Sequence record: MK799832.1
Strand: one strand, 5' to 3'
Length of the DNA: 64,000 nucleotides
The notes beneath the pieces are model-generated. The model was not told where the DNA came from and ran no database searches. It saw nothing but the letters and a program-made list of their open reading frames with translations. The position numbers and the translations under genes are program-made. Numbering within the stretch: the stretch's first letter is position 1; each line of letters begins with the position of its first letter. Below, in pieces: positions 1 through 40,582 of this stretch.

Positions 1-43
1 AATTACATCTGCTTCGGAATCAATTGTATCATTATCAGCATAA
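1..43 (-). repeat. Copy A of 43-nt inverted repeat (gp14 3' end)
   Basis: Reverse complement TTATGCTGATAATGATACAATTGATTCCGAAGCAGATGTAATT matches 40501-40543 at 42/43 nt. Confidence 0.97.
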
Positions 44-1431
44 GGTGTGACTAAATCATCGGTATTATAACCACCAATCACGTACTTTGCACCCGACTCT
101 TGACCTGTTAATACTTCACCAATCTGGAAGTATCCATCAACAATACTGACTTCCATAATATCATTGACACCATCCCATTCCTTGACTCTTGCTGTTGTAC
201 TTGAGATAGAACCAGTTACAACTTCGTTAAAGATAAATGTTCCACCAATAGACACTACATTAGATACTGCAGGACCAGATAATGTGACGATTGGGGTAGA
301 ATCATAACCCTCACCACCATCAATTACATATACTGCAGTTACGATACCAGATGCACTGATCGTCGATACACCAACTGCCTGTCTAGACGGACGTGGGAAT
401 GCAGAATCAAATGTATAAGAGGTAGAATCGAATGTGTAGAATGAGGAATCCCAAAGAGGATAAGCACCTGAGGTATTACCAATAGTAACAGTTGGTGCTG
501 CTGAATAACCAGACCCACCATCTGTAACTCTAATGGATTGAATAGAACCTGCTGTAGAGATACCTGTTGTTGCTGCAAATCCAGTACCACCACCTCCATA
601 TACGGTAATCATAGGTGGTTCTGTATAACCACAACCAGCATTGGTTATCAGAATTGTTGGGATAACACCAGACTTACCCTTACAACCTGGATACTCATAG
701 GATACTGACGCAATGCCTGTTGCAGTTACACCACCTGGAGGAGCTGAAGAGAAACCTACAACTGGTTGGGCAGTATATCCTCTACCCATATTAGATATTG
801 TAATCTCATTGACTGCACCAGATGCACACCAATCCGCTTCTGCAGTTGCAGTAGAACCGACACCAATCAGGTTGAGTGTTTGAATATAACCAATTTGTGC
901 GATCTCATCATCAATATTATCGACACCAGTATCGATAACTTCATCTTCATATCTGAAGAGTTCACATCTCAACTCATAGACATATGTCTTCTTGAGTTGA
1001 TAGAAGGGTTGCTCATGTTCAACGAACTTAATCTCGAACAATCTATCTCCCAATGGGAAATAAATCAAATCACCTTCCTTGGGTCTAGAGGTCAATTCCA
1101 TGTTTGGAAGACCTTCAGTTAATGGTGCAATATAGTTCTCAAATCTCTCTTTTGAGATGATTAATTGGAGGTCATCTCTATTTTCAATACCAAATTTTGA
1201 CAGGATAGTGCCCTGTCCAGTGTATCCTTCGTAATTATCAACGTATGCTTCTAAAGGATATGCATTCTTGAATTCAGACTCAATAACTTCACGAATAACT
1301 GTATTAGTCGTGGCATATGTTCTTGGAAGATAATACACTTCCACACCATACATCTGCAACTGTTCGTTGACAAGACTCTGGATTAGGTTTTGTTCGGATC
1401 TTGTACCGTTAAGAAAGAAGGGATTTAACAT
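1..1431 (-). CDS. gp14: Neck protein gp14, runs off window start (12 C-terminal residues missing)
   Basis: Hand-translated, absent from the ORF track because there is no stop in the window. ATG at 1431 gives MLNPFFLNGTRSEQNLIQSLVNEQLQMYGVEVYYLPRTY; the last codons are PYADNDTIDSEADVI. Directly follows gp13. Confidence 0.93.
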   Translation of the reverse strand, partial: MLNPFFLNGTRSEQNLIQSLVNEQLQMYGVEVYYLPRTYATTNTVIREVIESEFKNAYPLEAYVDNYEGYTGQGTILSKFGIENRDDLQLIISKERFENYIAPLTEGLPNMELTSRPKEGDLIYFPLGDRLFEIKFVEHEQPFYQLKKTYVYELRCELFRYEDEVIDTGVDNIDDEIAQIGYIQTLNLIGVGSTATAEADWCASGAVNEITISNMGRGYTAQPVVGFSSAPPGGVTATGIASVSYEYPGCKGKSGVIPTILITNAGCGYTEPPMITVYGGGGTGFAATTGISTAGSIQSIRVTDGGSGYSAAPTVTIGNTSGAYPLWDSSFYTFDSTSYTFDSAFPRPSRQAVGVSTISASGIVTAVYVIDGGEGYDSTPIVTLSGPAVSNVVSIGGTFIFNEVVTGSISSTTARVKEWDGVNDIMEVSIVDGYFQIGEVLTGQESGAKYVIGGYNTDDLVTPYADNDTIDSEADVI

Positions 1432-1437
1432 AAGTCA

Positions 1438-2310
1438 TCACCCGATCATGTCAAGAGGTGGTAACTCATATGTGCTCATCATTCTTTCCTGAATCCTATC
1501 TAATTCTGCTTGTGCATCATCATATAGTTGTCTACCATTGAACTCAATACCACCAGGAAGTTTTACACCCTGGAATTTAATTAAGTTCTGACCCCACTGT
1601 CTCTTAATCAGTGCAGTCAGATATGGTTTAATGAATGAATCGTTGTAAATTCTTGCATAATCATTAGGATCATTCATTGCCCAACAATCAAGAATTAAAA
1701 ACTCACCAGCATTAAGATCACTGTAATCAACATCGATATACAATCGATCAGTTCTTTGATTGAATCGAATCTGTTTATGTGTGTTTAGAATAAAGTTAAT
1801 TGTCTCAAGGTAACCCATTGTCATTGAGTATGACAACAGATCAAAACCACCAGCACCCCAACCATTCAGTCCGATAAAATCATTCAACATATACTGGTAT
1901 CTTACGTTGAACATACCAGCACCCATTCCTGCAGGATATTGGTAGATCTTATTAACACCAATAATTGATGGAGGAATCTGAATGTAATTACTGTTCTGAT
2001 AATAAGTGAACGTGGTTGCAGTACCAGCAACACTCGCAGATGCTGTTATTGATGTGATACCAGTGGTTCCATTTTCATTCTGAGGTGCACCAGGTGGTCT
2101 TGCTCTACCTCTCTTGATATCCTCCTCGGTAAGTTCGTACTTCAAATAAACCTTAGTGACACCATCAAAGTGTCTCTCCTGGAAATACTGAATGGCATCA
2201 TCTACAAGATCTTCAATTTGTTCATCTGCAACGTTGATCTCCAATACTGGAGCACCCAATTGTCTTAAACAATAATCAATCAGTTCTTGTCTAGTACTAG
2301 GCTGTGCCAT
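1438..2310 (-). CDS. gp13: Neck protein gp13
   Basis: RQELIDYCLRQLGAPVLEINV N-terminus and LIKRQWGQNLIKFQGVKLPGGIEFNG C-terminal motif; position before gp14. Confidence 0.95.
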   Translation of the reverse strand: MAQPSTRQELIDYCLRQLGAPVLEINVADEQIEDLVDDAIQYFQERHFDGVTKVYLKYELTEEDIKRGRARPPGAPQNENGTTGITSITASASVAGTATTFTYYQNSNYIQIPPSIIGVNKIYQYPAGMGAGMFNVRYQYMLNDFIGLNGWGAGGFDLLSYSMTMGYLETINFILNTHKQIRFNQRTDRLYIDVDYSDLNAGEFLILDCWAMNDPNDYARIYNDSFIKPYLTALIKRQWGQNLIKFQGVKLPGGIEFNGRQLYDDAQAELDRIQERMMSTYELPPLDMIG

Positions 2311-2334
2311 CTATAATGAGACCTACTTATATGT

Positions 2335-2568
2335 CTATTTATTTAATAAATCGGTGATAGTATTAAGCATATTCTTAATATCTGTCACTTCAGTTTTTAA
2401 ATTACTTACCTCAGACTGAAGAGAGTCAAATTTCTTTTTATCCTCTCTCAGTTTTTCTCGGTTTCTCACATATGTTTCATAATCGATATTGTTTGTGTTA
2501 ACAATGGCCCCAGAATGGATGTCTCTATAATAGCCATCCATTCCATCAACGGGAATCATATTGTCCAT
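2335..2568 (-). CDS. Small hypothetical protein with coiled-coil-like C-terminus
   Basis: 77-aa ORF packed between the VrlC-like gene and gp13 on the coding strand. Confidence 0.75.
   Translation of the reverse strand: MDNMIPVDGMDGYYRDIHSGAIVNTNNIDYETYVRNREKLREDKKKFDSLQSEVSNLKTEVTDIKNMLNTITDLLNK
2336..2342 (-). promoter_or_regulatory. T4-type late promoter core ATAAATA upstream of gp13
   Basis: ATAAATA overlapping the upstream stop. The same core occurs at 11774-11780 and 13182-13188 (-) and at 44917, 45183, 46789, 55059, 57022, 60916, 62551 and 63908 (+). Confidence 0.65.
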
Positions 2569-2569
2569 A

Positions 2570-5500
2570 TTATGCGAATGAAAGTACTCTCAGGTTTCTG
2601 ATCATTGGTACAGTAGACTGATCTGTCGAAGTACCAATGATCTTAATTCTAAATGTCTTGAATGGTTTTACTTCATCAATAGTAAACTTGTACTCTTTAT
2701 ATTGATCTTGAGTTGGTTCTGGGACATAAGCATCAACCTTAGGAACTCTCTTATCAGGAGTACCATTGTTTGATGAAATGTCAAGAATAGCACCGTTAAT
2801 ATCAATATTCTTATAACCAGGGAAAGGAACAAAGATTGTCTCTTCTACTGGTACATCTTGATTAAGTGCATAGAATACTCTAATGTCACTGTAGTTTGAT
2901 ACGTAACCATCAAGTAGAACTTGTAATGATGATGCTGGATTCTCAAGAGTTACATTCTTAGATACATATGTGAATCTGTTAGGATCATCTTCAGTACCAT
3001 TAACTCTAAAGTCAGCAACATAATCTGTAACAGGGCGACTGATTCTGTTCATTGTATAAACAACAGATGCATTATCCAGGTCAATGACAGGACTGATTCT
3101 AGAGTTTCCAGACAGTAAAGTGAATTGCATTTCGAATGACTTATTACCAGCAAAGGTATCACCGCTCAACAGATTACTTTCGTTTTGTGCCGAAGCAACC
3201 ATTCTTTGACCATCAAAATAGTTCTTATCAAAGATTGTGACTTGTTTATATCCCTTGTCGAGATATGACTCCTGATTGCCAGATACACTCGAAGCAGAAA
3301 TCGTTCTAACTTGTGAGATGAGGTTTGTGCCTTGTGGTGTAATAGTGGTAACCTTAGGAGTAATCAAGTTATATGGTAAGTTGTAAGTACCCTTGACCAA
3401 TGGTCCGCCTGCAAGTTTGTTTTCCTTGAAGTAGAGTGGTGGGAATCCTGCAGCATTAGCAGGTGCTCTATTCGTACCATTTGCATTCATCTGAACCTTG
3501 ATATAATAGTAGTCAAGTCCAATAGGTGCTTCATCTAATTCACTTGAAACTACATTTGCAAGTAGATGTGAAGTATTGATTCTTCTAAGAGATACACCAT
3601 TCAACTCATACTTGTAGATAAGTTCACCAGAGGAGTGTGTTGCGATGGTTGTATTATCAATACCTCTTGTAACACCAGTCAGAGTTCTACCATTTACACC
3701 AGTGTAAGAAATAATCTCATCACCAATCTTCACATAACCTGGGTTGGTACCACCTACACCAAGATTTTCAAAGGTTTCAAAGTCTGTCGCCAAACCTTCG
3801 ATTGTGATGAAGGTTGTGGTGTCAAAACCATATTCTTGTGAAAGAGTATTAGGAACAAGGTCACTTCTAACGTCAGAGATTGTTACTCTGTTTACGTTAG
3901 AGTAGAGACCATGATTTCTCTGGAATACTCTGATGTAATTACCCTGTTCAGTAACATTGATAGGTGATACAGGAATAACATTTCCACCAACATCATTAAG
4001 TTCAGTTGTAAATCCAACACTGTTTTCATAATAAAGTGGGTATGCAGAGTTGGTTGTAAAGTTACCCTGTACGTTATCAAGTACAAGTGTATTATTACCA
4101 AGAAGTTCGTTGACAGAAAGTTGAATACCAGAACCTAGATTGACACTTCCAACTTGTACAGGTGTCAATACATCACCAACAACGTAACCAGTACCACCTG
4201 CTCTAACTACTGCAGCAGTTGCAACACCATTTTCAATTGTAATGTCAGCGGTGGCATTCACACCCTTACCAGTAACAGCAGTAAGTGCTACACCAGTGTA
4301 GGTGAAAGTTGCTGAAGAAGGTGTGTATCCAACACCAGCATTTGTAATCGTAAAGTTAGAAGTTACAGATCCTGCGAATGCAACCAGAGTACCTTGTGCT
4401 CCATTACCCAACTGTTTGACAGTTCTACCGACAACGAGACCACTATCACTTACAGTTGTTCCAAGACCAACTCTGATTTCTCTTGAGTTGACTGTCAAAC
4501 CATTAGGATCGATCTGTGCAAGATCTGATGGAAGTTCTGGGTTGTAGAATGAAACAGAACCCTGTGACTTGAAGTTTGCCACATAAAGATTGAACTTAAG
4601 ATCCTCATACTGAGAAGGTGTCCATACAGAAGCATTCTGAGACTTAAAGAGAGAACCAAGAAGTGGTTGCTCGGTAACCAGAATCTGACCTGCTTCTTGA
4701 CCCAATGTTGTTACATCAGCCTCACCAAGTCTACTAATCCAAACTCTGTATTCTGTAGAATGTGAGAGAAGAACCATTGCATATTCTTTCTCAGGGTTCA
4801 GATAAACTGGAGCATCAAGTGTTATAGTTGTTGCTACAGTACCATCATCACTGAGGTTTACATCTTTAGGATCTATACTCTTGAATGAGAAAGGAAGAAC
4901 TTTGTCGGTTGGGGTACCAAGATTGGTCTCTCTAATTTCGAAGAGAACAGGAATATTTTCATCCTTTGTTACAAAGAACAAATCAACTTTAGTGATGAAT
5001 ACACCCGTTGGATCATCAACTAAGAACGTTTGTGCAAGTGGGTCAATGCGTGGCGGAATGACACGTACAGATGTAGTAGATGTGGATTGTGTATCGGTGT
5101 TTGTATCTGTAATTGTAATCGTATTTGATGTTGCTGTATCTCCGATATTTCTTCTCTGAGTTAGATCAGCTCTTCTTACTGTTGCATTTCTAACAGAGAG
5201 AGTTGTTTCTTGAGTCGTATCAACATCACCTTGTGAATAGAAGATTGATTCACCAGCAGTTGATACAAGTCCTTCAATTGTACTGTTAGTTCTACTACTG
5301 GTGAGTCTGAAACTTGATCTACCAGTTTCAAAGATTGGGTTTGCGGGATTGTTAGGACTTGGGACAAAGTATGATGCTTGAAGTGTACCAACTCTATCCG
5401 TGATAAGTCTTACATTAGAAACCCTAGCCTGTGCACCACTAGATGCTCCAGTCAGGATCATTGATCTAGAAATCCATCCACTAAATTGTGGGAAGTCTTG

Positions 5501-30482: not shown

Positions 30483-30538
30483 TTTTTATTATACCAAGTA
30501 TGTAGTCCTCTGTCAATCACTGAGGGTATCGGTAAACC

Positions 30539-30964: not shown

Positions 30965-30986
30965 GAACTGTGGCCCTGGTATGTTA

Positions 30987-31665: not shown

Positions 31666-31675
31666 GATGATTGCC

Positions 31676-31713
31676 GTGGTTACACTATAGGAGACCTTTG
31701 GAGGTGAGTAATT
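31676..31713 (-). promoter_or_regulatory. Repeated putative early promoter motif, copy 1
   Basis: AATTACTCACCTCCAAAGGTCTCCTATAGTGTAACCAC. Confidence 0.8.
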
Positions 31714-31768
31714 TTGAAGTCCTCAGAGTGTTACAGATAAGTGATACTGATTTGACACGATTGGGGGG

Positions 31769-31797
31769 TTGACAGAATAGGAAAGGCCTGATAGACT
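31769..31797 (+). promoter_or_regulatory. Plus-strand sigma70-like promoter
   Basis: TTGACA-17 nt-TAGACT, pointing antisense to all surrounding genes. Confidence 0.6.
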
Positions 31798-31983
31798 ACG
31801 GTCTTAGACGACTATAAGATCAGGCATTTAGCAGGGGGTTTATAGGCACTCATGAGATACTAGCGAGACCCTTTGTAGCACATTACAAGACACTTTCGCA
31901 AACATTCGCATACATTTATAAAAGGCTTTAATATACAAAAAAAGGCAAATAGCAGTATTTATTCACCTTTTTGGAGGGTAATT

Positions 31984-32169
31984 TCATTGTAACTTAGTGA
32001 AAGGATTACATGTTGTTCTTGTTACTGGATCACCTAATTGTTCTCTTGTTGGGATGTCATCATGTGGTCTGTAAGCTGATATAATAGGTGATAACAAGAG
32101 AGCTAATCTTTCATCCATTTGTGTATGTCTGAGGTGATAGATTTGATGGCCTTGTGCAGGGCGGTTCAT
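31984..32169 (-). CDS. Hypothetical protein, 61 aa
   Basis: ORF track; coding strand; cassette under motif copy 2. Confidence 0.55.
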   Translation of the reverse strand: MNRPAQGHQIYHLRHTQMDERLALLLSPIISAYRPHDDIPTREQLGDPVTRTTCNPFTKLQ

Positions 32170-32199
32170 GATGAATGAAATAAAGAATGATCTGCAGGT

Positions 32200-32517
32200 T
32201 CATACAGTAGTCATCTCCAGATAATCAGCTTCAGTTTGTAACTTCTTACCATTCCAAATATAGATCATTGGATCATCACAAGCACCATAATCTTCAACCT
32301 CTCCATCATCATTAAAAGTTACATAATCACGCAGTGAAACTACAACCATTGCGGTCTGATTACCAAGATGATTGATACATGCTTCGAGAGTGTAATCATC
32401 AAGATCACCACAAGCTGGAGTCCATTGAATATCAAGATCTTCGTTGCGATCTTCCTCTACAATATAACGGTGCTCATCTACAGAAAAGTCAAAGGCTTCG
32501 ATAGTGGCGAATTCCAT
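32200..32517 (-). CDS. Acidic hypothetical protein, 105 aa
   Basis: ATG 10 nt downstream of motif copy 2. Confidence 0.75.
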   Translation of the reverse strand: MEFATIEAFDFSVDEHRYIVEEDRNEDLDIQWTPACGDLDDYTLEACINHLGNQTAMVVVSLRDYVTFNDDGEVEDYGACDDPMIYIWNGKKLQTEADYLEMTTV

Positions 32518-32526
32518 GCGATTTAA

Positions 32527-32564
32527 GTGGTTGTACTATAGTGGACGTTTAGAGGTGAGTAACT
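32527..32564 (-). promoter_or_regulatory. Repeated motif, copy 2
   Basis: AGTTACTCACCTCTAAACGTCCACTATAGTACAACCAC. Confidence 0.8.
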
Positions 32565-32727
32565 TTGTAGAGTTATGATTGACTTACTTTATTGATAACA
32601 ACTCGATGAGCAGGGTATCTCGCTTCAACTAATTGTCTTATAAAGTCTCTATCAGAACGATCAGATTGAAGAGAAAACTCATGCCTTCTCCCCTTGTCAT
32701 CATTCCAATAACCAGTGCAATTGTAGA

Positions 32728-32982
32728 TCATTTGAAGAAATTAAGACGGTGGAGTTCAGTATAAGCGAAACGACGCATATTGTCATCCTCTGTTGTATGA
32801 TACAAATTGATCATACGTTGACAATAATCAGACCTCTTTGTAATCGGTGTGATACTTTGGCGTGAAGTGTAGCCAATGTCATTGTTACCATTGGTGCGAA
32901 CTTTAGGCCGGCCAAAGTTACCAGTGACATTACCAGTTGTTCTCAGTTTGGGCTTGATCTTTGAGAGATTTGAATCAGTCAT
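32728..32982 (-). CDS. Basic hypothetical protein, about 84 aa
   Basis: MTDSNLSKIKPKLRTTGNVTGNFGRPK; start placed at the ATG overlapping the upstream stop (ATGACTGA). Confidence 0.7.
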   Translation of the reverse strand: MTDSNLSKIKPKLRTTGNVTGNFGRPKVRTNGNNDIGYTSRQSITPITKRSDYCQRMINLYHTTEDDNMRRFAYTELHRLNFFK

Positions 32983-33112
32983 GAACTTCAGAGTTGTCAT
33001 CAATTACAGTTACAATTTGTCCGTCCTGAGTTAGAATTTCATACTGAGTTTGAAATGATGAAATATCAGCCTTTCCAACAATAATAGCAGTGGAGAGAAG
33101 AAATTCAATCAT
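32975..33112 (-). CDS. Small hypothetical protein, 45 aa, hydrophobic N-terminus
   Basis: Hand-translated MIEFLLSTAIIVGKADISSFQTQYEILTQDGQIVTVIDDNSEVHD. Confidence 0.6.
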   Translation of the reverse strand: MIEFLLSTAIIVGKADISSFQTQYEILTQDGQIVTVIDDNSEVHD

Positions 33113-33172
33113 CAGTTAAACCTTTGTACAAAAAGAACAATAAAAAAATGAGAAGAATAAAACCTATGGAGA

Positions 33173-33424
33173 TCATAACTCCCATAGCATTTCATTCATC
33201 TCATTCACATCAATGTTAGGATCATCCCAACGAACACCATCACCAGTGGTGAAGTCTCCGATGTTGTTCATACAAAGAATGAAACGATCCCATACACTTT
33301 CCAAACCCTCACGGTAAGTTACACATGCCTTGGCAGTGTTGTAGAGAAACTCATCATTGCCGATCCAAAGAGCAGCGTTCCAAGTTTCATAATTAGACCA
33401 ACCGTTGTAGGTAGAATCAGACAT
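33173..33424 (-). CDS. Hypothetical phage protein with YNGWxNYETWN motif
   Basis: YNGWSNYETWNAALW is a motif I recognise from small phage early proteins; function unknown. Confidence 0.8.
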   Translation of the reverse strand: MSDSTYNGWSNYETWNAALWIGNDEFLYNTAKACVTYREGLESVWDRFILCMNNIGDFTTGDGVRWDDPNIDVNEMNEMLWEL

Positions 33425-33523
33425 AGTAGAAAAAGAAATAAAGGTGGTGATTAAGTGTGGTTCAGAGAAACAAGTCAGAGAAGCAATCTAGAAGAGAGAA
33501 GTCTGAGCGAGAAGTCTGAACCC

Positions 33524-33557
33524 TTACACTATAGGTGACCTTTCGAGGTGAGTAATT
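33524..33557 (-). promoter_or_regulatory. Repeated motif, copy 3
   Basis: AATTACTCACCTCGAAAGGTCACCTATAGTGTAA. Confidence 0.8.
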
Positions 33558-33562
33558 CTGTG

Positions 33563-33766
33563 TCAGACCAAATCGTACTTGATTGATTTCACACAATAGC
33601 CAACATCATCAGCAATAATATCCATTAAATGCTCCTCATCTTTGGCATCCCATAATTCATCCTTTGTCTCATCAATGAGGCATTCTTGAGTAAATTCACC
33701 TGGAGGACCAAATTCCTCATCATTCCAATCAAACTCAATTTCAGTCACTTGATAAAACTTTTTCAT
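33563..33766 (-). CDS. Acidic hypothetical protein, about 67 aa
   Basis: MKKFYQVTEIEFDWND; the ATG overlaps the upstream stop (ATGA). Confidence 0.7.
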   Translation of the reverse strand: MKKFYQVTEIEFDWNDEEFGPPGEFTQECLIDETKDELWDAKDEEHLMDIIADDVGYCVKSIKYDLV

Positions 33767-33906
33767 TGACAATCAGGATGGGGTTGAGGTAGTGTGGCAC
33801 ATGCATTTTGATGTGCATTGTTGATCGATTGTGTGTCCCTTATCGCTAACAACACATTGATAAAAACAACAGCGATAAAGGGAAAAATAAAGAGATGAAT
33901 CTTCAT
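33763..33906 (-). CDS. Small membrane protein, 47 aa
   Basis: MKIHLFIFPFIAVVFINVLLAIRD...CATLPQPHPDCQ; start/stop overlaps with both neighbours. Confidence 0.65.
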   Translation of the reverse strand: MKIHLFIFPFIAVVFINVLLAIRDTQSINNAHQNACATLPQPHPDCQ

Positions 33907-34064
33907 CACATGCCATTCATAAAGTCATGAATTGCTTCCAAATACTCTTCTTTGGTCTCAAATGTGCGACCGTAGATAGTCTTTGGAAATTCGCCAAGTT
34001 TGGCGGGTTTGTTGACAGGATCTTTGCCCTGTGACTTGATTTGGTCGATGTAAGTGTTTCTCAT
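33906..34064 (-). CDS. Small hypothetical protein, 52 aa
   Basis: MRNTYIDQIKSQGKDPVNKPAKLGEFPKTIYGRTFETKEEYLEAIHDFMNGM; ATG directly abuts TATAGT of motif copy 4. Confidence 0.6.
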   Translation of the reverse strand: MRNTYIDQIKSQGKDPVNKPAKLGEFPKTIYGRTFETKEEYLEAIHDFMNGM

Positions 34065-34094
34065 ACTATAGTGGACCTTTCGAGGTGAGTAATT
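34065..34094 (-). promoter_or_regulatory. Repeated motif, copy 4
   Basis: AATTACTCACCTCGAAAGGTCCACTATAGT. Confidence 0.8.
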
Positions 34095-34099
34095 CTGTG

Positions 34100-34300
34100 T
34101 CAGTCTAATCTCTTGAAATGAACTGAATTAAACTGACCTGATTTGTTCTCTAATGTAATCTTAGTGTACCATGGTTGAATGTCAACACTCTCGACAACAT
34201 AGCGATGACCAACTATCAAATGAGATGGATAATCACTCGATGCCCATAACAACTGTTCATGAGTTGCTCCCTTAAATTCTACTATATCACCTGACTGCAT
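34100..34300 (-). CDS. Hypothetical protein, 66 aa
   Basis: ORF track; stop 5 nt from motif copy 4. Confidence 0.7.
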   Translation of the reverse strand: MQSGDIVEFKGATHEQLLWASSDYPSHLIVGHRYVVESVDIQPWYTKITLENKSGQFNSVHFKRLD

Positions 34301-34550
34301 TTATCATATCCTCCCACACTTCTTCGCCCATCATATCACTAATCTCCTCTTGCAAGTCAGTTTCATCATAATCTTTCATATTTGCTTCTATTTGTTCTGC
34401 TGCCCACTGACATAGAGTCTTGAGATCCATACCATCAACGATTAGCCAGGCATAGTCATTCTTTAGGTTATCAAGTTGTTCAGGTGTGAGTGTCATTGGA
34501 TCAGTGTAATGTGCGACAAAAGACATAAAAAAAGAGGGTAAAACCCTCAA
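34287..34550 (-). CDS. Acidic hypothetical protein (true start probably internal)
   Basis: ORF track; MTLTPEQLDNLKNDYAWLIVDGMD is a plausible real N-terminus. Confidence 0.65.
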   Translation of the reverse strand: MRVLPSFFMSFVAHYTDPMTLTPEQLDNLKNDYAWLIVDGMDLKTLCQWAAEQIEANMKDYDETDLQEEISDMMGEEVWEDMINAVR

Positions 34551-34891
34551 GCAAAAACATAACCAGAATGAAAATCTTCAACGTTGTAGACTTTACCAGT
34601 CACAGAAGATTCACCAATGAACTTGCGAACATACCAGAGAAAGTCTTTCTGGAAAACACCTTCACCAGCGATACAATACTCTTCGCAAAGTGCATTGAGT
34701 CGTGATTTAGTGGTGTTAGATTGCCAACCACCGTCAAAGATAGTCAGGCTAGTGTCATCAACCAGAGCAATTTTATTGCCGTGGAGATAAACAGTAGAAA
34801 CACCCATGTTAGTGACAACTTCAGTGTTTCCAGATTTCCAGTTCTTGTTGCCGTTGATGGCTTCAATCATCTGGGATTCAATCTTACGCAT
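34547..34891 (-). CDS. Hypothetical protein, 114 aa
   Basis: MRKIESQMIEAI...VYLHGNKIA...SNTTKSRLNAL; first gene after motif copy 5. Confidence 0.8.
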   Translation of the reverse strand: MRKIESQMIEAINGNKNWKSGNTEVVTNMGVSTVYLHGNKIALVDDTSLTIFDGGWQSNTTKSRLNALCEEYCIAGEGVFQKDFLWYVRKFIGESSVTGKVYNVEDFHSGYVFA

Positions 34892-34906
34892 GTGGTTTAG
34901 TGGTTC

Positions 34907-34940
34907 TTACACTATAGTGGACATTTCGAGGTGAGTAATT
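34907..34940 (-). promoter_or_regulatory. Repeated motif, copy 5
   Basis: AATTACTCACCTCGAAATGTCCACTATAGTGTAA. Confidence 0.8.
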
Positions 34941-34943
34941 CTG

Positions 34944-35561
34944 TCACTCAGTAATTTGTTCGACTTGAGTATTATCACCACCAAAGTTAGTGACTTCATG
35001 CAACTTACTTCCAGTAATGGTACCGCCAACCATCAATGAAATTGTGGAGATAAGTACAATCCAGAAACGAAGGTGAAAGTTTTTCTCTTGAGTAAACTTA
35101 GACCCATATTTGTAACCAACAAAGGCACCACCAAACATACCAACAAGAGGTGCCAATGCGTAGGCGACAAATCCACCAATACCAATGGCAGCGAGTATCA
35201 ACAATCCACCAACATCAGCACCAGAGAGTGAAGAACCCTCACCACTGTTAGTGTTGTTGTAACTGACACTATGTGTGCCACTAGATGTTACACCGCCACT
35301 GAATGAGTTGTTGATAGATTGTTGAGTTTGTTCGGCAGCACTTGTTCTATTTGCTCTTGTTTCTTCACGTTTTTGTTTCTCTTTCTCTCCCCATATCTGA
35401 GAGTCAATACATTTAACACCAGAAATCTTGGCACCAGGATAACGAGCTTCAAATATTTCCTTGGCACCAGCTGCGGTGTTTGGCCCCTCACAAGTGACAT
35501 AATGACCTGAATATCCATTCACAGAGTGAATACGACCTTGCCAAGTGTGAACGTTAGCCAT
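34944..35561 (-). CDS. Hypothetical membrane protein, 205 aa
   Basis: Soluble N-terminus, Ser/Gly-rich linker, hydrophobic Gly-rich segments LLILAAIGIGGFVAYALAPLVGMFGG and FWIVLISTISLMVGG. Confidence 0.75.
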   Translation of the reverse strand: MANVHTWQGRIHSVNGYSGHYVTCEGPNTAAGAKEIFEARYPGAKISGVKCIDSQIWGEKEKQKREETRANRTSAAEQTQQSINNSFSGGVTSSGTHSVSYNNTNSGEGSSLSGADVGGLLILAAIGIGGFVAYALAPLVGMFGGAFVGYKYGSKFTQEKNFHLRFWIVLISTISLMVGGTITGSKLHEVTNFGGDNTQVEQITE

Positions 35562-35576
35562 GATAAAAGAATTGCG

Positions 35577-35614
35577 TTGGTTGTACTATAAGAGACCTTT
35601 GAAGGTGAGTAATT
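35577..35614 (-). promoter_or_regulatory. Repeated motif, copy 6
   Basis: AATTACTCACCTTCAAAGGTCTCTTATAGTACAACCAA. Confidence 0.8.
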
Positions 35615-35742
35615 CTAAAGAGTGACAAGTGGCCTTACATTGTATCAAGGTAACCACACCAAAACATGATACAAATGCCACACATTATGGGCCTTACATG
35701 AGTGTTGTAACCACCACAGAAATTACACTCAATGCCCATCAA

Positions 35743-35925
35743 TCAAAAAGGATTAGTCCATTTGTGGTGTTGTTGTTTCGTGATTCTACCGTCATCAAGT
35801 AAACTATCAACCACATTTAGGAAGACAGCCCACTTCATGTCGCGAGTGAAAGTAATACCTTCCTCTTTACAATGAGTGTTCACAGTATTACGAACAACGC
35901 GTTGAACTTCAGTTTTTGTCATCAT
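35743..35925 (-). CDS. Hypothetical protein, 60 aa
   Basis: ORF track; ATGA overlap with the upstream ORF. Confidence 0.7.
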   Translation of the reverse strand: MMTKTEVQRVVRNTVNTHCKEEGITFTRDMKWAVFLNVVDSLLDDGRITKQQHHKWTNPF

Positions 35926-36086
35926 TTGATAGATTCGAGAATAGAACGACGAGCCTCATAGGCTTGAAATTGTGAATTGAATGTGGCGATCTTAGTAAAG
36001 TCTTCCCTCCAATAAAGAGCCCATTTGTGTGACCCTATCACACCTTTAGCGATGATAGGGTTATCAATACCGAGTGGATAAGTCAT
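35922..36086 (-). CDS. Small hypothetical protein, 54 aa
   Basis: Hand-translated MTYPLGIDNPIIAKGVIGSHKWALYWREDFTKIATFNSQFQAYEARRSILESIK; first gene after motif copy 7. Confidence 0.65.
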   Translation of the reverse strand: MTYPLGIDNPIIAKGVIGSHKWALYWREDFTKIATFNSQFQAYEARRSILESIK

Positions 36087-36095
36087 GCTAGTTCA

Positions 36096-36133
36096 GTGGT
36101 TACACTATAGGGGACATTTCAAGGTGAGTAATT
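36096..36133 (-). promoter_or_regulatory. Repeated motif, copy 7
   Basis: AATTACTCACCTTGAAATGTCCCCTATAGTGTAACCAC. Confidence 0.8.
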
Positions 36134-36286
36134 CTGTGTTAGACTAATTAAGAGATTTTGTTGACGTTGTGAATCAGAATCTTCCTTGAATGGTTCATAC
36201 TCAGGATGAGCATTTTCCCACCGTTTCAGATCATCATTCCATTCCTCTTGTTTTAACACATTGTCCCAAAAATTGTTGTAGTTCAT
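36119..36286 (-). CDS. Small hypothetical protein, 55 aa, reads into motif copy 7
   Basis: MNYNNFWDNVLKQEEWNDDLKRWENAHPEYEPF...; ATGA overlap upstream. Confidence 0.5.
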   Translation of the reverse strand: MNYNNFWDNVLKQEEWNDDLKRWENAHPEYEPFKEDSDSQRQQNLLISLTQNYSP

Positions 36287-36486
36287 TCTTCAACAACAGA
36301 TTGGATTACAAATTGTGGTTGATTTCGATTACAAGTTGCAATTGCTTCTTCTTTACTAGAAGCAATGTAACCTAGACAATCTCTCATTGTCCAACCATTA
36401 GCACGATGATGTTCACCGTAGATCAGAAACTTAGATTCTTTCATGTTATCAACCTCCGTAGACTTCTTCAGCCATAGGTGTATCAC
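36283..36486 (-). CDS. Hypothetical protein (true start probably MKESKF)
   Basis: ORF track; coding strand. Confidence 0.65.
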   Translation of the reverse strand: MIHLWLKKSTEVDNMKESKFLIYGEHHRANGWTMRDCLGYIASSKEEAIATCNRNQPQFVIQSVVEE

Positions 36487-36676
36487 TCATGCGATCGAGG
36501 TGATCCCAAAGTGTGTTTTTTTCACCAAACATTTCTTGGAAGAGATCAAGATCTTGACGATCATATTGATCTTTAACAATCCAAATCTCTTGTTCAATCC
36601 ATGCAAGTTCTGCACGAGCTTTATCTAGTTTCTTACGAAGTTCGTAAAGCTTTTGGTTTCTTTCTGTGAGTGTCAT
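36449..36676 (-). CDS. Hypothetical protein, 75 aa, coiled-coil-like
   Basis: First gene after motif copy 8. Confidence 0.7.
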   Translation of the reverse strand: MTLTERNQKLYELRKKLDKARAELAWIEQEIWIVKDQYDRQDLDLFQEMFGEKNTLWDHLDRMSDTPMAEEVYGG

Positions 36677-36685
36677 AATGATTCA

Positions 36686-36723
36686 GTGGTTACACTATAG
36701 TGGACATTTCGAGGTGAGTAATT
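36686..36723 (-). promoter_or_regulatory. Repeated motif, copy 8 (consensus)
   Basis: AATTACTCACCTCGAAATGTCCACTATAGTGTAACCAC. Confidence 0.8.
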
Positions 36724-36726
36724 CTG

Positions 36727-37317
36727 TTAGCCCAACAATACCTGAGGAAAGTATGGAGTCAGGTCAGAATCTACAATCTTATGTTCACAACTCACAAATT
36801 TCTTTCGTGATACATTCTTGACATAGATCAGGTGGTTAATGTCAATATCTTTGTAATCTTGTGGTCCACGTTTACGAATAAGACCAAAGGCTTCGTTCTC
36901 TTCGCGAGTGGAAACAACGACCTTTGAAAGTTTATCAATGTCTGTCAAAAAGTGAGTGATAAGATCATAAGAACGATCTTCCACAAACTTATCATAATGA
37001 TATGCAAATATAAACTTTGAACCACTACGAACTCCGCCGAAGTGTTCTTTAGTCAAACTGTGTCCGCCTTTGACTTTCATATCAATTACACTGGACAAAG
37101 TTTTGTCAGGATATTCACTCCACTTGACAAAAGCTTGTGGTGTCAACAATGCACCAGTGTCATCGATTTTATGAGAACTAGCCCAACAAATACCACCAGA
37201 AAGATCCTCTACAACCTTGAACATAGTCTCACGGGTGTAGATATTGACCTGCTCATCTGTCAAGGACATAATCAGTTTGAGCTGATTAGTTAGGAATCTT
37301 TTAGTGGTGGCAGTCAT
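36727..37317 (-). CDS. Hypothetical protein, 196 aa
   Basis: Sole gene between motif copies 9 and 8. Confidence 0.8.
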   Translation of the reverse strand: MTATTKRFLTNQLKLIMSLTDEQVNIYTRETMFKVVEDLSGGICWASSHKIDDTGALLTPQAFVKWSEYPDKTLSSVIDMKVKGGHSLTKEHFGGVRSGSKFIFAYHYDKFVEDRSYDLITHFLTDIDKLSKVVVSTREENEAFGLIRKRGPQDYKDIDINHLIYVKNVSRKKFVSCEHKIVDSDLTPYFPQVLLG

Positions 37318-37326
37318 CGGTTTAAT

Positions 37327-37362
37327 GTGGTTACTTAAGTGGACATTTAGAGGTGAGTAATT
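37327..37362 (-). promoter_or_regulatory. Repeated motif, copy 9
   Basis: AATTACTCACCTCTAAATGTCCACTTAAGTAACCAC. Confidence 0.75.
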
Positions 37363-37566
37363 CTATTTGAGCTCAATTCGGTCAATCAAGACCATACCAA
37401 GGTCAAAATATAGATCATCATCAATGTCACCAAGCTTTTCACGGAGAGCATCACCAACCATGTCGGTCATCATCTCCATATAACGCTCATCTTCATAGAT
37501 TTGATTGATAATATCCTCCTTCAATGCGTCGGCAAGTTTGGATACACATTTTGCAGAAAGTGCCAT
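37363..37566 (-). CDS. Acidic hypothetical protein, 67 aa
   Basis: Stop TAG directly abuts motif copy 9. Confidence 0.7.
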   Translation of the reverse strand: MALSAKCVSKLADALKEDIINQIYEDERYMEMMTDMVGDALREKLGDIDDDLYFDLGMVLIDRIELK

Positions 37567-37647
37567 GTCAGTTGTTAGTGAGAATGTTGATGATTGTGAT
37601 AAACATTACACCACACATGATGTAATAGATGAAACGAAAAATAGCCA

Positions 37648-37974
37648 TTATCGCATGTAAAGATAACCACCTGCCCAATCGGCACGTTGATAGCACTGTT
37701 CGCGGGATTCAATCCTCAGAAGATTGTAACGGACCCCTTTGGCTGGTGCTTTGAATGATGCAGGTTTGTAAACATCACCAGTCTTCTTATCAACAAAAGC
37801 ATGAACACTGCGGGAACCTGATTCGGTCTCCATGATTAGTTTGTGATACTTACGACCAGACTCAATGTAGAACTTATAGGCGCGGTCATAATTATGACAA
37901 CGAAGGTAATCTTCCATCAACACACTGCAAAGAATTTTGGCGTGTTTTTCAACAATTTGTGTGGGAGTGATCAT
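37648..37974 (-). CDS. Hypothetical phage protein with KPASFKAPAK motif
   Basis: GRKYHKL...VHAFVDKKTGDVYKPASFKAPAKGVRYNL is a motif I recognise from small phage proteins; function unknown. Confidence 0.8.
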   Translation of the reverse strand: MITPTQIVEKHAKILCSVLMEDYLRCHNYDRAYKFYIESGRKYHKLIMETESGSRSVHAFVDKKTGDVYKPASFKAPAKGVRYNLLRIESREQCYQRADWAGGYLYMR

Positions 37975-37982
37975 AACTTTGT

Positions 37983-38020
37983 GTGGTTACACTACTGTGG
38001 ACTTTTGGAGGTGAGTAATT
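37983..38020 (-). promoter_or_regulatory. Repeated motif, copy 10
   Basis: AATTACTCACCTCCAAAAGTCCACAGTAGTGTAACCAC. Confidence 0.75.
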
Positions 38021-38135
38021 CTGTCAACCGACGATTGATAGTGGCTACTTCTACACTACTGTGTGGGATTAGATATTTTTGATTTACCCACACAATCTTA
38101 CGAGTGTCAATATCTGATGCGATGTTGTAAGTCAT
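37992..38135 (-). CDS. Small hypothetical protein, 47 aa, reads into motif copy 10
   Basis: MTYNIASDIDTRKIVWVNQKYLIPHSSVEVATINRRLTELLTSKSPQ; ATGA overlap upstream. Confidence 0.5.
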   Translation of the reverse strand: MTYNIASDIDTRKIVWVNQKYLIPHSSVEVATINRRLTELLTSKSPQ

Positions 38136-38452
38136 TCAAGTTCCTCAATAGGGTTGGCGTAAAGATCATTCTCTGTGGTCACATCAGTGAACACATCTTC
38201 ATCATCATCAGAAAATAACAGATACAAAATCTCATCATTATCCTTGACATTCCACTCTTGATAGAGAGAAATAATGTCACCAGATACCCTATCTTTATTT
38301 TTCTTCTTCTCTAAAGATTTACCTAGTTTCTTGATTCGTTTCTCATATACAACTTGCTGATCATTGGCAAGATATTCAACTCTATCAAGATTGAAGATAA
38401 ACTTATTACCTTCAATCTCAAAGGTTTCGGAATTTGCGGTATCGAAATTCAT
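38132..38452 (-). CDS. Hypothetical protein, 106 aa
   Basis: ORF track; preceded by a sigma70-like promoter. Confidence 0.7.
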   Translation of the reverse strand: MNFDTANSETFEIEGNKFIFNLDRVEYLANDQQVVYEKRIKKLGKSLEKKKNKDRVSGDIISLYQEWNVKDNDEILYLLFSDDDEDVFTDVTTENDLYANPIEELE

Positions 38453-38473
38453 AATAATAATGTGGTTAATTCA

Positions 38474-38501
38474 ATTGTATCCTATAAACTACAGATGTCA
38501 A
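38474..38501 (-). promoter_or_regulatory. Host-like sigma70 promoter
   Basis: TTGACA-16 nt-TACAAT, overlapping the upstream stop. Confidence 0.55.
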
Positions 38502-38707
38502 TCTGCAGTGACAGTGGTGGCCTTGCCTACGTTAGATGGGCCTTTCCAGACCAAACCATCTTCCTCCCACTTAGCGATAAATGCACGACGAAGCATCATC
38601 AACTCATCATATCGTGATTGTTGGGAAGAAGTATAGTTGAAGTTTTGTGCCCTCCAAGTCTTACGCAGTTCTTGAAGTTCACGAATGATTTGAGAAGAAT
38701 TGTTCAT
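38498..38707 (-). CDS. Hypothetical protein, 69 aa
   Basis: ORF track; coding strand. Confidence 0.7.
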   Translation of the reverse strand: MNNSSQIIRELQELRKTWRAQNFNYTSSQQSRYDELMMLRRAFIAKWEEDGLVWKGPSNVGKATTVTAD

Positions 38708-38748
38708 GATGTTGTTCTTAGATTAAGTAAAATAAGTTAAGGTTTATG

Positions 38749-39006
38749 TCATTCAATACGAGTGATTACAACGTAATTGGAATCATCATCAAATTTAGGG
38801 GGATGGATCGTCCTCGTCACTTTGTAGCCCGTTTTCTTCAATGCACTAGGAATATCTGGGCCCCTGTAGTCTTCACAATAATCATCACAGCGAAGAATGA
38901 ATGACATTCCAATATCTAGTTGTTGCCATGGGTATTTCTGTTTACGACCCTTACTAGAAGCATAAAATAGTTCTTCAATTTGATGGGGGGTGTAGATTTC
39001 GGACAT
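38749..39006 (-). CDS. Hypothetical protein, 85 aa
   Basis: First gene after motif copy 11; contains KYPWQQLDIGMSF. Confidence 0.7.
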   Translation of the reverse strand: MSEIYTPHQIEELFYASSKGRKQKYPWQQLDIGMSFILRCDDYCEDYRGPDIPSALKKTGYKVTRTIHPPKFDDDSNYVVITRIE

Positions 39007-39014
39007 GATTAGAC

Positions 39015-39052
39015 GTGATTACAATAGAGTGGACGTTTGGAGGTGAGTAATT
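39015..39052 (-). promoter_or_regulatory. Repeated motif, copy 11
   Basis: AATTACTCACCTCCAAACGTCCACTCTATTGTAATCAC; overlaps the upstream TAA. Confidence 0.75.
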
Positions 39053-39602
39053 ATGAACCGAGACAGAATTGTCTGAGTTTCCGAGTAATAGAGGGTGCAG
39101 TGATGTCTTCCGACACAACATATGCCTCTAATTCTTCCAGAATAGTATCTTCATGAAGACCCTTGGCTTTCAGTCGCGAACGTAACTGAGCAAGACGTTC
39201 TTCATCATAAGATGGAGACAAAGACAAGAATTTAGCAAGTTCTTCTTCATTGAACATCGTTGTAGTTTTACCATCAGCAATATAACCACTTGCACAATCT
39301 TGGATTACATGATGTGCCTCATGTCGCAGTGTGTTGTAGTCATTCTCAGTCCATTTGTATTGTTTATTTGAACCTGGAATCATCTTGTCTTGACAGATAA
39401 CTAACATTCCAGAATAAGGATAGTAAATACCATCCATTTTCTTTCTGTCATTACAATGATTGAGATGATTGACCAAAGTAACTACACCAAGGTCTTGCAA
39501 AGTGTTCCACAATTCATTATGGTCATCATGAATGTCAGCCTTGGCAATACCAGGATTGAGAACTGTGGTTGCTGCGAGAAGAGAAAGGAATAGTTTTTTC
39601 AT
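39051..39602 (-). CDS. Putative exported zincin-like metallopeptidase
   Basis: Signal-peptide-like MKKLFLSLLAATTVLNPGIAKA; TLRHEAHHVIQDC (HExxH) with a distal EELEAY. Confidence 0.6.
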   Translation of the reverse strand: MKKLFLSLLAATTVLNPGIAKADIHDDHNELWNTLQDLGVVTLVNHLNHCNDRKKMDGIYYPYSGMLVICQDKMIPGSNKQYKWTENDYNTLRHEAHHVIQDCASGYIADGKTTTMFNEEELAKFLSLSPSYDEERLAQLRSRLKAKGLHEDTILEELEAYVVSEDITAPSITRKLRQFCLGS

Positions 39603-39607
39603 GTTAA

Positions 39608-39859
39608 TCAGAAGTCAGGTCCAAGAATTTGCATAATATCAGCAGGATCAGTACTGCCGAGATAAGTCTCAGTAAAGAGAATTGCTAGTTCTCTACTACC
39701 AAACTCAATCTCTACATTATCCCAGATCCTGTCATTATATACTTTGACAGTGATAGGTTGAACACCCGATTCTTCAATTGTTTCAGAAATATTAAAATAA
39801 ATGTCATCACCATCACTACAATCAAAGTCATAAGTGACTTTTACAGTTGACATAATCAT
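39608..39859 (-). CDS. Acidic hypothetical protein, about 81 aa
   Basis: ORF track; coupled to the upstream ORF. Confidence 0.65.
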   Translation of the reverse strand: MIMSTVKVTYDFDCSDGDDIYFNISETIEESGVQPITVKVYNDRIWDNVEIEFGSRELAILFTETYLGSTDPADIMQILGPDF

Positions 39860-40095
39860 TTTGATTCCTCCAGAGTAATAGTACGATACTGATTGATAAT
39901 AGTCTCTAGATTATCAATACAATATTGCATTGTGGCACGAGAGTAACCAGTAGCATAAGGATAACCCTGATCAGGATTATTCAATGCATCATGGGATACA
40001 TTCACTCCATCTTGAAGACTTTCGATGATTGTGATTAGTTTGGTGTCGATGTTCATGATAGGTAATAAAAAACCGCTGTAGGGGATCAGAGACAC
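39856..40095 (-). CDS. Hypothetical protein (true start probably MNIDTK)
   Basis: ORF track; contains GYPYATGYSRATM. Confidence 0.65.
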   Translation of the reverse strand: MSLIPYSGFLLPIMNIDTKLITIIESLQDGVNVSHDALNNPDQGYPYATGYSRATMQYCIDNLETIINQYRTITLEESK

Positions 40096-40112
40096 CTTAC
40101 AGCGGAGAATAG

Positions 40113-40322
40113 TCAGACAGTGGTCTTAGGACCAAACTCACGTTGATAAGAATCTTTCACATACTCAACAGTTTGTTGAATGAAAGGCTTGACATAATCA
40201 ACGAGTTGTTTTACATCTTCAATGAGCTTGTTAGTCTCATACTGATGAATCTCCCAACGTACTTTGATGTCGGCAAGATACTGTTGACGAGTAATAAGAA
40301 CTTGAGGAGTGGTTTGAGTCAT
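40113..40322 (-). CDS. Hypothetical protein, 69 aa
   Basis: First gene after motif copy 12. Confidence 0.7.
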   Translation of the reverse strand: MTQTTPQVLITRQQYLADIKVRWEIHQYETNKLIEDVKQLVDYVKPFIQQTVEYVKDSYQREFGPKTTV

Positions 40323-40328
40323 AGAAGT

Positions 40329-40369
40329 GTGGTCTCTACACTATAGGGGACATTTGGAGGTGAGTAATT
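40329..40369 (-). promoter_or_regulatory. Repeated motif, copy 12
   Basis: AATTACTCACCTCCAAATGTCCCCTATAGTGTAGAGACCAC. Confidence 0.8.
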
Positions 40370-40372
40370 CTG

Positions 40373-40500
40373 TCACCTCTTCTTTTTCTTGAGTTTGTTA
40401 ATCAATGTCATCGCAGATTGTCTGTTACGACATACTTTAACCACCACACCATTGTGAACAAACACAAGTTTAGTTGTTGAACCAACCAGTGGAATTGCAG
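40373..40500 (-). pseudogene. 5'-truncated small ORF cut by the strand-switch junction
   Basis: Frame ...AIPLVGSTTKLVFVHNGVVVKVCRNRQSAMTLINKLKKKKR* ends 3 nt before motif copy 12 like the other cassette genes, but has no ATG at its 5' end. Confidence 0.55.
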
Positions 40501-40582
40501 TTATGCTGATAATGATACAATTGAGTCCGAAGCAGATGTAATTATAGACTTCTCATCAAGTAATCCATTCGGTATGCCCTAA
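40501..40582 (+). other. gp14: Orphan 3' end of gp14 (copy B of the repeat plus the missing 12 codons and stop)
   Basis: Translates YADNDTIESEADVIIDFSSSNPFGMP*, the continuation of the gp14 frame that leaves the window at position 1. Confidence 0.92.

Follow-up and report, generated by a model that had tools for sequence, protein, structure and literature searches.

The apparent 40.5-kb inversion in the genome record of Synechococcus phage S-B05 is almost certainly an artefact of contig assembly and deposition

GenBank record MK799832.1, titled "complete genome" (208,857 bp), describes the cyanophage Synechococcus phage S-B05, and its first 40,500 bases lie inverted relative to the block that follows them. 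This arrangement raises the question of whether the phage itself carries an inversion or whether the record was put together in the wrong orientation. Bases 1-64000 of the record were analysed (hereafter the window, 64,000 nucleotides in all), and base 1 of the window is also the first base of the public record. The longest inverted repeat of the window was found at this locus: positions 40501-40543 match the reverse complement of positions 1-43 at 42 of 43 positions, as had been claimed from the sequence in the original prediction. Judged from its length, such a match cannot be a product of chance in 64 kb. The copy at 1-43 (minus strand) holds gp14 codons (...YADNDTIDSEADVI), and the copy at 40501-40543 (plus strand) forms the first 43 nt of the next block and has the sequence found in all relatives. 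The sole mismatch, A versus C at window base 19, changes GAT (Asp) to GAG (Glu); C stands at this position in phages RB11-B and RN05-S and in two environmental contigs described below, and A is present only in the copy at 1-43.

The gene interrupted at this repeat encodes the neck protein gp14. An open frame of 477 codons (1-1431, minus strand) runs off base 1 and matches the T4 neck protein family (Pfam PF11649, E 1.8e-32) and the head-closure protein Hc2 (phrog_460, E 1.3e-125); gp14 is unannotated in MK799832.1. Directly upstream on the same strand lies gp13, the neck protein or head-tail adaptor (1438-2310, minus strand; phrog_211, E 1.4e-45, and the record's annotation). On the other side of the breakpoint, the plus-strand translation of 40502-40582 reads YADNDTIESEADVIIDFSSSNPFGMP followed by a stop, which is the 3' end of gp14 with 26 codons; the 12 codons and stop missing from the first fragment therefore sit at 40544-40582, on the opposite strand, and are absent from the inverted segment. 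The gp14 stop is separated by 24 nt from the ATG of gp15 (tail sheath stabiliser, 40607-41605, plus strand; PF16724, E 4.4e-84), which is followed by gp16 (terminase small subunit, 41615-42043, plus strand). The 477 and 12 codons add up to 489 aa; the intact gp14 of RB11-B is equally long and has the same ending. The expectation that gp14 leaves the window in frame, that its missing end lies just before gp15 and that joining the two restores both a 489-aa protein and the order gp13-gp14-gp15 was thus borne out in each part.

Once the first segment is reversed, S-B05 matches exactly the canonical T4-like module gp13-gp14-gp15-gp16-gp17. RB11-B and RN05-S carry this module as well, and in Prochlorococcus phage P-HM2 and Escherichia phage RB14 the genes gp13-gp14-gp15-gp16 share a strand. 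The cyanophage gp14 is 489 aa long, whereas that of the T4-type phage RB14 has 256 aa (771-nt CDS), and the likeness between cyanophage and T4-type gp14 is limited to the N-terminal ~175-220 residues.

A second S-B05 deposit bears directly on the nature of the breakpoint. MH920638.1, titled "partial genome" and exactly 40,500 bp long, is 100% identical to window positions 1-40500; two of its CDSs are marked incomplete, that at 1-1431 (gp14) on the low side and that at 40373-40500 on the high side. Because the segment equals a separately deposited sequence with partial CDSs at both of its ends, 40500/40501 is a contig boundary. This segment, referred to here as contig 1, holds gp14, gp13, VrlC-like and baseplate genes, and a cluster of early genes. 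The 43-nt inverted repeat is, on the sequence evidence, the overlap of contig 1 with the next contig.

The arrangement at the junction was compared with that in close relatives and in environmental sequences. In RB11-B, RN05-S and S-B43 (95-99% identical), gp13-gp14-gp15 is uninterrupted, and window positions 40501-42500 and 1-3000 map next to each other in all three, on opposite strands and with an overlap of exactly 43 nt. For the sister phage S-B43, Nanopore sequencing had been employed (PMC12783734). An 83-nt pattern diagnostic of the canonical junction has a single occurrence in each of RB11-B and RN05-S, and a search of the S-B05 record for this pattern found none. RB11-B and RN05-S were submitted in the same batch (accessions PV261924 and PV261925) and hence are only partly independent of one another. 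The canonical junction, with the 43-nt overlap merged, also occurs in two independent environmental contigs, IMGVR_UViG_3300032087_003937 and BCSF01000111.1. A 40-mer spanning 40500/40501 had no match in IMG/VR.

Logan contigs from four marine metagenomes were also aligned to window positions 37801-43500; the results given here are for the best contigs listed, with 216 more beyond these, and contigs lose rare variants. Among the contigs listed, none from the four metagenomes bridged 40500/40501, and in three of the four metagenomes a listed contig departs from the window precisely at this point. The match of the X1 contig ends at 40500 and is followed by 939 nt unlike the window; the loose end of the X2 contig before 40501 equals the reverse complement of window positions 44-73, so that the body of gp14 runs straight into 40501; and the X4 contig begins at 40501, preceded by 23 unaligned letters. 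The contig end, the metagenome contigs and the IMG/VR search all point to 40500..40501 as an artificial join.

The right end of contig 1 displays the same type of damage with a different partner. A small ORF of 67 aa is cut here: its 3' part (41 codons and stop) occupies 40373-40500 on the minus strand, and its 5' part begins at record position 158737 on the plus strand, in agreement with the earlier claim that the ORF loses its 5' end at the junction. Like gp14, this ORF is whole after correction. The terminal 102 nt of contig 1 (40399-40500), annotated by the depositors as a repeat_region, are repeated in inverted orientation at record 158813-158914 with 101 of 102 positions identical. RB11-B carries a merged version of this overlap with one substitution, and from the equivalent of position 40500, RB11-B, RN05-S and S-B43 all run into the helicase cluster. 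The 102-nt overlap has no nearby partner; its copy lies 118 kb away, differs from the 43-nt overlap at the left end, and identifies the sequence that truly adjoins contig 1 on the right.

These features recur throughout the record. RB11-B and RN05-S are colinear from end to end; compared with either of them, the S-B05 record breaks at an identical set of 12 block boundaries. Six boundary pairs have end overlaps of 37-102 nt: the two at the ends of contig 1 and four others of 37-93 nt. The boundaries near record 74540-74562 and near 206528 are without a duplicated overlap, and a 3.1-kb stretch at record 203385-206528 is unique to S-B05. Block boundaries cut nrdB, gp53 and the gp43 DNA polymerase, the pieces of which are 95 kb apart, and gp44 loses its 3' end where the record stops. 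Even in a circularised record, the last base (208857) would be 14 nt away from completing gp44, and this end has a separate 93-nt overlap with another part of the record. Judging from these block comparisons, the join at 40500/40501 is one of 12 comparable mis-joins in MK799832.1.

Taken together, these data indicate that the apparent 40.5-kb inversion is almost certainly an artefact of assembly and deposition, in which contigs were left unmerged and placed in the wrong order and orientation, and is not biology. The S-B05 genome would have been assembled into a dozen or so contigs, the ends of which overlapped their true neighbours by tens of bases; MK799832.1 would then have been made by writing the contigs consecutively, presumably by hand or by an automatic step, with overlaps unmerged and with order and orientation wrong. 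Contig 1 would have been placed first, in the orientation opposite to that of the next block. As a consequence of this opposite orientation, the shared 43 nt would show as an inverted repeat (1-43 and 40501-40543), gp14 would fall into two parts, 477 codons that run off base 1 and, at 40544-40582, the remaining 12 codons with the stop, and the other end of contig 1 would abut sequence that it never touched in the phage. The real genome would run from the reverse complement of 44-40500 into 40501 and onward, with gp13-gp14-gp15-gp16 on one strand, and at the other end from 40500 into record positions 158812 and below, read as the reverse complement, through the 5' part of the small ORF, an HNH endonuclease and a helicase. 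The original prediction had favoured overlapping contigs joined in the wrong orientation, and the partial-genome deposit, the relatives, and the environmental and metagenome contigs all support that choice. The locus shares with contig-concatenation artefacts breakpoints that coincide with contig ends, ends that duplicate tens of bases of true neighbours, genes interrupted where contigs meet, absence of the joins from relatives and independent assemblies, and recurrence across the record; no difference was seen among the features tested. For other phages, a sister publication of that group reports SOAPdenovo, SPAdes and ABySS assemblies merged with CISA; on DNA extraction and gap filling it refers to the paper describing S-B05 (its reference 27; Arch Virol 2020, doi 10.1007/s00705-020-04595-6). 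The DNA of S-B05 itself presumably lacks the junction given in the record; the public sequencing runs located were all metagenomes, available as contigs.

A real 40.5-kb inversion in S-B05, produced by homologous recombination between inverted 43-nt copies of the gp14 3' end, was also considered. The repeat stands precisely at the boundary, as this explanation would have it, and the single mismatch could be read as divergence of two real copies; however, the inverted segment is exactly the separately deposited contig of 40,500 bp. Recombination of this kind would be expected to leave one repeat shared by both borders, and continuous flanks, but the borders of contig 1 carry different overlaps, the left copy starts at base 1 of the record, the partner of the right border is the distant copy at 158813-158914, and the record ends inside gp44. 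Moreover, such an inversion would leave gp14 without its last 12 codons and stop, the same signature at other boundaries would split gp43, nrdB and gp53, and the junction is present in none of the five close relatives or environmental contigs. A real inversion between inverted repeats was rejected on the differing overlaps and the identity with the deposited contig, and is considered very improbable. It is more improbable still that S-B05, or a subpopulation of it, truly carries the inverted segment with a C-terminally truncated gp14, in which case the match with the deposited contig would come from assemblers breaking at the inverted repeat.

A programmed invertible segment of the Mu G or P1 C type, in which a site-specific invertase acts on short inverted repeats, would account for the short inverted repeat, and for that at one border only. 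The Mu G (Gin) and P1 C (Cin) segments measure ~3-4 kb and are flanked on both sides by one and the same repeat; a serine invertase gene adjoins them, and each orientation yields an intact, alternative tail-fibre gene. The S-B05 segment resembles them in having a short inverted repeat, in belonging to a tailed phage and in lying close to tail and virion genes, but it is 40.5 kb long, more than 10 times the length of known invertible segments such as those of Mu and P1, and the overlaps at its borders differ. The annotation of record positions 1-45000 contains no invertase or recombinase, and none of the 10 ORFs of 105-630 aa near the junction had a recombinase match in Pfam. In addition, the orientation in the record truncates both gp14 and the small ORF, which is not a switch between two intact genes, and the relatives are fixed in one orientation. 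With no recombinase found in that annotation or those ORFs and with gp14 destroyed, this explanation was rejected as scarcely credible. The converse reading, that RB11-B and RN05-S were mis-assembled and that the S-B05 order is true, could draw on their shared submission batch, but it is just as implausible. At the gp14 junction it is refuted by the independent contigs: S-B43, the IMG/VR contig, a metagenome contig of the JGI collection and Logan contigs from independent studies reproduce the relatives' junction. The order of RB11-B and RN05-S also agrees with the gp13-gp16 order of P-HM2 and RB14, and conserved genes (gp14, gp43, gp44, nrdB and gp53) are intact only in that order.

The apparent inversion is thus without biological significance, and the value of the finding lies in curation. 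MK799832.1 is labelled a complete genome, yet it almost certainly consists of about a dozen unmerged contigs scrambled in order and orientation, in which genes including gp14, gp43, gp44, nrdB and gp53 are interrupted or joined into chimeric ORFs. Analyses of synteny, gene content, genome size or rearrangement that use this record take over its false inversions and its lack of core genes; comparisons of cyanomyoviruses and of jumbo phages include it (PMC7472177; PMC7824862). In genome scans, a contig overlap should be presumed when a repeat reaches precisely to base 1 of a record, unless shown otherwise.

The repeated element of the early-gene cluster was also examined. No conserved RNA structure was predicted in this element, and Rfam and tRNA scans of the window returned nothing. 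The array of early-promoter-like elements lies on a single strand in RB11-B and RN05-S, but in the S-B05 record it is divided between 12 elements on the plus strand (31684-40340) and two on the minus strand (156037 and 156965), a further point in favour of the artefact.

The apparent inversion of the 40.5-kb segment at window 1-40500 (contig 1) is almost certainly an artefact of assembly or deposition and not a real feature. Window 1-3000 and 39500-42500 were 100% identical to the same coordinates of MK799832.1 by megablast against a phage collection; this record is the linear, 208,857-bp "complete genome" of Synechococcus phage S-B05 (Kyanoviridae; host Synechococcus sp. MW02). The first 64,000 bases of the whole record are exactly equal to the window, so record and window begin at the same base, which answers the opening check suggested in the original prediction. 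A separate deposit, MH920638.1 ("Synechococcus phage S-B05, partial genome"), is exactly 40,500 bp long and 100% identical to window 1-40500. Its CDS 1-1431, annotated as T4-like gp14, is flagged incomplete at the low end, and its CDS 40373-40500 at the high end; MK799832.1 omits both partial CDSs and labels 40399-40500 a repeat_region instead. The match to this 40,500-bp deposit with partial terminal CDSs identifies 40500/40501 as the end of an assembly contig.

What the original prediction had described at this junction was borne out. It had paired the reverse complement of 1-43 with 40501-40543, with one Asp/Glu mismatch; in a repeat search this pair was the longest of the window's inverted repeats (43 nt, 98% complementary), and the sole mismatch was at base 19, where the left copy has A and the right copy C (GAT, Asp, versus GAG, Glu). 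The gene said to leave the window in frame at base 1 is a 477-codon open frame on the minus strand (1-1431) and is indeed gp14, matching PF11649 (T4 neck protein, E 1.8e-32) and phrog_460 (head closure Hc2, E 1.3e-125), with gp13 (1438-2310) directly upstream. The gp14 3' end also lies where it had been placed: plus-strand 40502-40582 translates to YADNDTIESEADVIIDFSSSNPFGMP followed by a stop, and gp15 (40607-41605; PF16724, E 4.4e-84) begins 24 nt after this fragment and is followed by gp16. Joining 477 and 12 codons yields the anticipated 489 aa, equal in length and C-terminus to the uninterrupted gp14 of RB11-B (PV261925.1), a close relative. The minus-strand ORF at 40373-40500 lacks its 5' end, as had been noticed, and is the CDS flagged incomplete at its high end in MH920638.1.

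The canonical arrangement was found in relatives and in environmental sequences. S-B43 (MN018232.1), RN05-S (PV261924.1) and RB11-B, which are 95-99% identical and were isolated on the same host strain, match window 40501-42500 and 1-3000 on opposite strands with an overlap of exactly 43 nt (in S-B43, at 19456-21455 and 21413-24412). An 83-nt string for the canonical junction, in which the reverse complement of window 44-63 is followed by the 43-nt overlap and then by window 40544-40563, has a single copy in each of RB11-B and RN05-S and is absent from the S-B05 record. A 39-nt pattern over 40543/40544 matched one contig in IMG/VR (IMGVR_UViG_3300032087_003937) and one from a metagenome (BCSF01000111.1); each joins the gp14 body to the gp15 side without a break, and the two alignments overlap by 43 nt. 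A 40-mer spanning 40500/40501 had no match in IMG/VR. Prochlorococcus phage P-HM2 and Escherichia phage RB14 carry gp13, gp14, gp15 and gp16 as neighbours on one strand. RB11-B, RN05-S and the two environmental contigs all have C at the mismatch position, as does the 40501-40543 copy, so the A at base 19 is confined to the terminal 19 nt of contig 1 and is most simply a contig-end error.

A search of public runs with window 38500-42500 found none of the S-B05 isolate, but many marine metagenomes containing 70-82% of the sampled 31-mers. Fourteen runs from nine studies (marine, seawater, sediment and viral metagenomes) contained 71-82%, indicating that near-identical phages are widespread in the sampled waters. 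Logan contigs of four marine metagenomes were aligned to window 37801-43500, giving many pieces beyond the matches listed, and none among the matches listed bridged 40500/40501. One metagenome (X1) held a 1092-nt contig whose first 153 letters lie on 40348-40500 and whose remaining 939 are unlike the window. In another (X2), the loose end just before 40501 is a 30-mer identical to the reverse complement of window 44-73, meaning that the gp14 body continues directly into 40501; in a third (X4), a contig match begins at 40501, preceded by 23 unaligned letters. These contigs, which come from metagenomes and not from S-B05 reads, support the absence of the record-type join without proving it.

The right end of contig 1 has a different partner. 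Its last 102 nt (40399-40500) match, in reverse complement, record 158813-158914 (101/102 identical), the other annotated repeat_region of MK799832.1, and the merged right junction (window 40379-40500 plus the reverse complement of record 158793-158812) was found in RB11-B with one substitution. A 67-aa ORF of RB11-B (MHYT...KKKKR) is present in S-B05 as two pieces with the 102-nt overlap in common, the 5' part starting at record 158737 on the plus strand and the 3' tail at window 40373-40398. The equivalent of window 40500 leads into a helicase cluster in RB11-B, RN05-S and S-B43; in the S-B05 record this cluster occupies the opposite strand at about 157010-158188. The true right-hand neighbour of contig 1 is adjoined by a gene for an HNH or homing endonuclease (record 158283-158765), which is also found in RB11-B (locus L010:18560-19042); RN05-S and S-B43 lack it at that site, so near-identical phages differ in whether they carry it there.

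At its two borders, the 40.5-kb segment thus has different overlaps with different partners, which fits contig ends and not an inversion at paired inverted repeats. A real inversion of that kind, the alternative in the original prediction, draws on the 43-nt inverted repeat, but it calls for one repeat shared by both borders and for uninterrupted DNA outside them, and neither is present; closing the record into a circle would put base 1 next to a truncated gp44 at 208857. An invertible segment of the Gin/Cin type would require an invertase and two functional orientations; the record orientation destroys gp14, no recombinase is annotated in record 1-45000, and none was detected in ten ORFs near the junction. 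The possibility that the relatives are the mis-assembled ones fails, because their order leaves conserved genes intact and independent contigs repeat it.

The same pattern continues along the remainder of MK799832.1. RN05-S and RB11-B are colinear throughout, differing only in the start point of the linear record, and the positions at which S-B05 departs from one are also those at which it departs from the other. Its "complete genome" is made up of about 13 blocks, scrambled in order and orientation versus RB11-B and RN05-S. In record coordinates, and with orientation relative to RB11-B, these are 1-40500 (+), 40501-74562 (-), 74540-100593 (+), 100592-121231 (-), 121232-141269 (+), 141940-158914 (-), 158915-169353 (-), 169352-188600 (-), 188602-195814 (-), 196112-199871 (+), 199869-203384 (+), 203385-206528 (3.1 kb, with no nucleotide match in RB11-B or RN05-S) and 206529-208857 (-). 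Besides the 43-nt and 102-nt overlaps, four further pairs of block ends have sequence in common: 100523-100593/188530-188600 (71 nt, inverted), 121163-121231/158915-158983 (69 nt, direct), 188600-188636/199872-199908 (37 nt, inverted) and 199779-199871/208765-208857, at the record's very end (93 nt, inverted), for an overall range of 37-102 nt; the boundaries at about 74540-74562 and about 206528 showed no overlap. The break in DNA polymerase gp43 falls at RB11-B 86911/86912, and its pieces are 95 kb apart in the S-B05 record; nrdB and the baseplate wedge protein gp53 are cut at block boundaries, gp44 is cut 14 nt short of its end at the record's last base, and further genes cut or fused at boundaries include speD and a tail-fibre-like gene. 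It is implausible that a phage would have all of these genes split. We infer that contigs were written end to end, which would account for every cut gene in the record. The overlapping, mis-oriented contigs favoured by the original prediction are thus supported by MH920638.1, the different end overlaps and the relatives, and this reading applies to the whole record. Beyond correcting or flagging MK799832.1, the apparent inversion is of low interest.

The 3.1-kb stretch at 203385-206528 forms, with the speD 3' end, a 1070-aa ORF annotated 'adenosylmethionine decarboxylase proenzyme', which is probably a chimera across a false join. S-B43 matches window 38000-40500 only from 39013 on and there adjoins plus-strand carbohydrate-binding and tail-fibre genes; the break (S-B43 locus 202564-211051, around locus position 3501-3540) falls at a copy of a repeated early-gene element at window 39023. 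S-B43 comes from the same laboratory as S-B05, has an earlier partial-genome deposit (MH920637.1, 33,652 bp) and may contain mis-joins of its own.

The early-gene element (30 nt as searched; conserved over 30-40 nt) has 12 plus-strand copies in window 31684-40369, with 0 expected by chance. All 12-13 copies in RB11-B and RN05-S form one array on one strand; in the S-B05 record, the array goes on with two opposite-strand copies at 156037 and 156965, as it should if contig 1 continues, inverted, in the block that ends at 158914. Every gap between genes of the minus-strand early-gene cluster contains the element (RNA sense ..AATTACTCACCTC..AAA.GTCCACTATAGTGTAACCAC...), most copies end about 10-20 nt before an ATG, and a TATAGT hexamer within it resembles a -10 box; no conserved secondary structure was predicted from the 12-copy alignment. 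It looks like a putative early promoter cassette, conserved in RB11-B and RN05-S. Two 12/12 sigma-70 consensus promoters, each with a TG extension, are on the minus strand at 30488-30516 and 30935-30964, in or beside the 30.5-32.0-kb region, which has only short ORFs and a slightly higher G+C (0.43).

Elsewhere in the window, a 630-aa tail-fibre-like protein (43009-44901, plus strand) has an N-terminal Pfam Mtd_N domain (major tropism determinant N-terminal domain, E 1.1e-8). The ORF annotated 'PurM' (27941-28567, minus strand) had no Pfam match at E up to 0.01, and this annotation may be unreliable. Four to five tandem 45-nt (15-codon) units occupy 12081-12281 within a 458-aa minus-strand ORF (11780-13156). 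Three genes at record 105755-108377 carry the annotations methyltransferase, asparagine-synthase-like and DNA-cytosine methyltransferase; by annotation alone, the trio resembles the cmoA and cmoX neighbourhood with which the sister phage S-B43 makes 5-glycylcarboxymethylcytosine (PMC12783734). Hypermodification of the DNA might be one cause of a fragmented short-read assembly.
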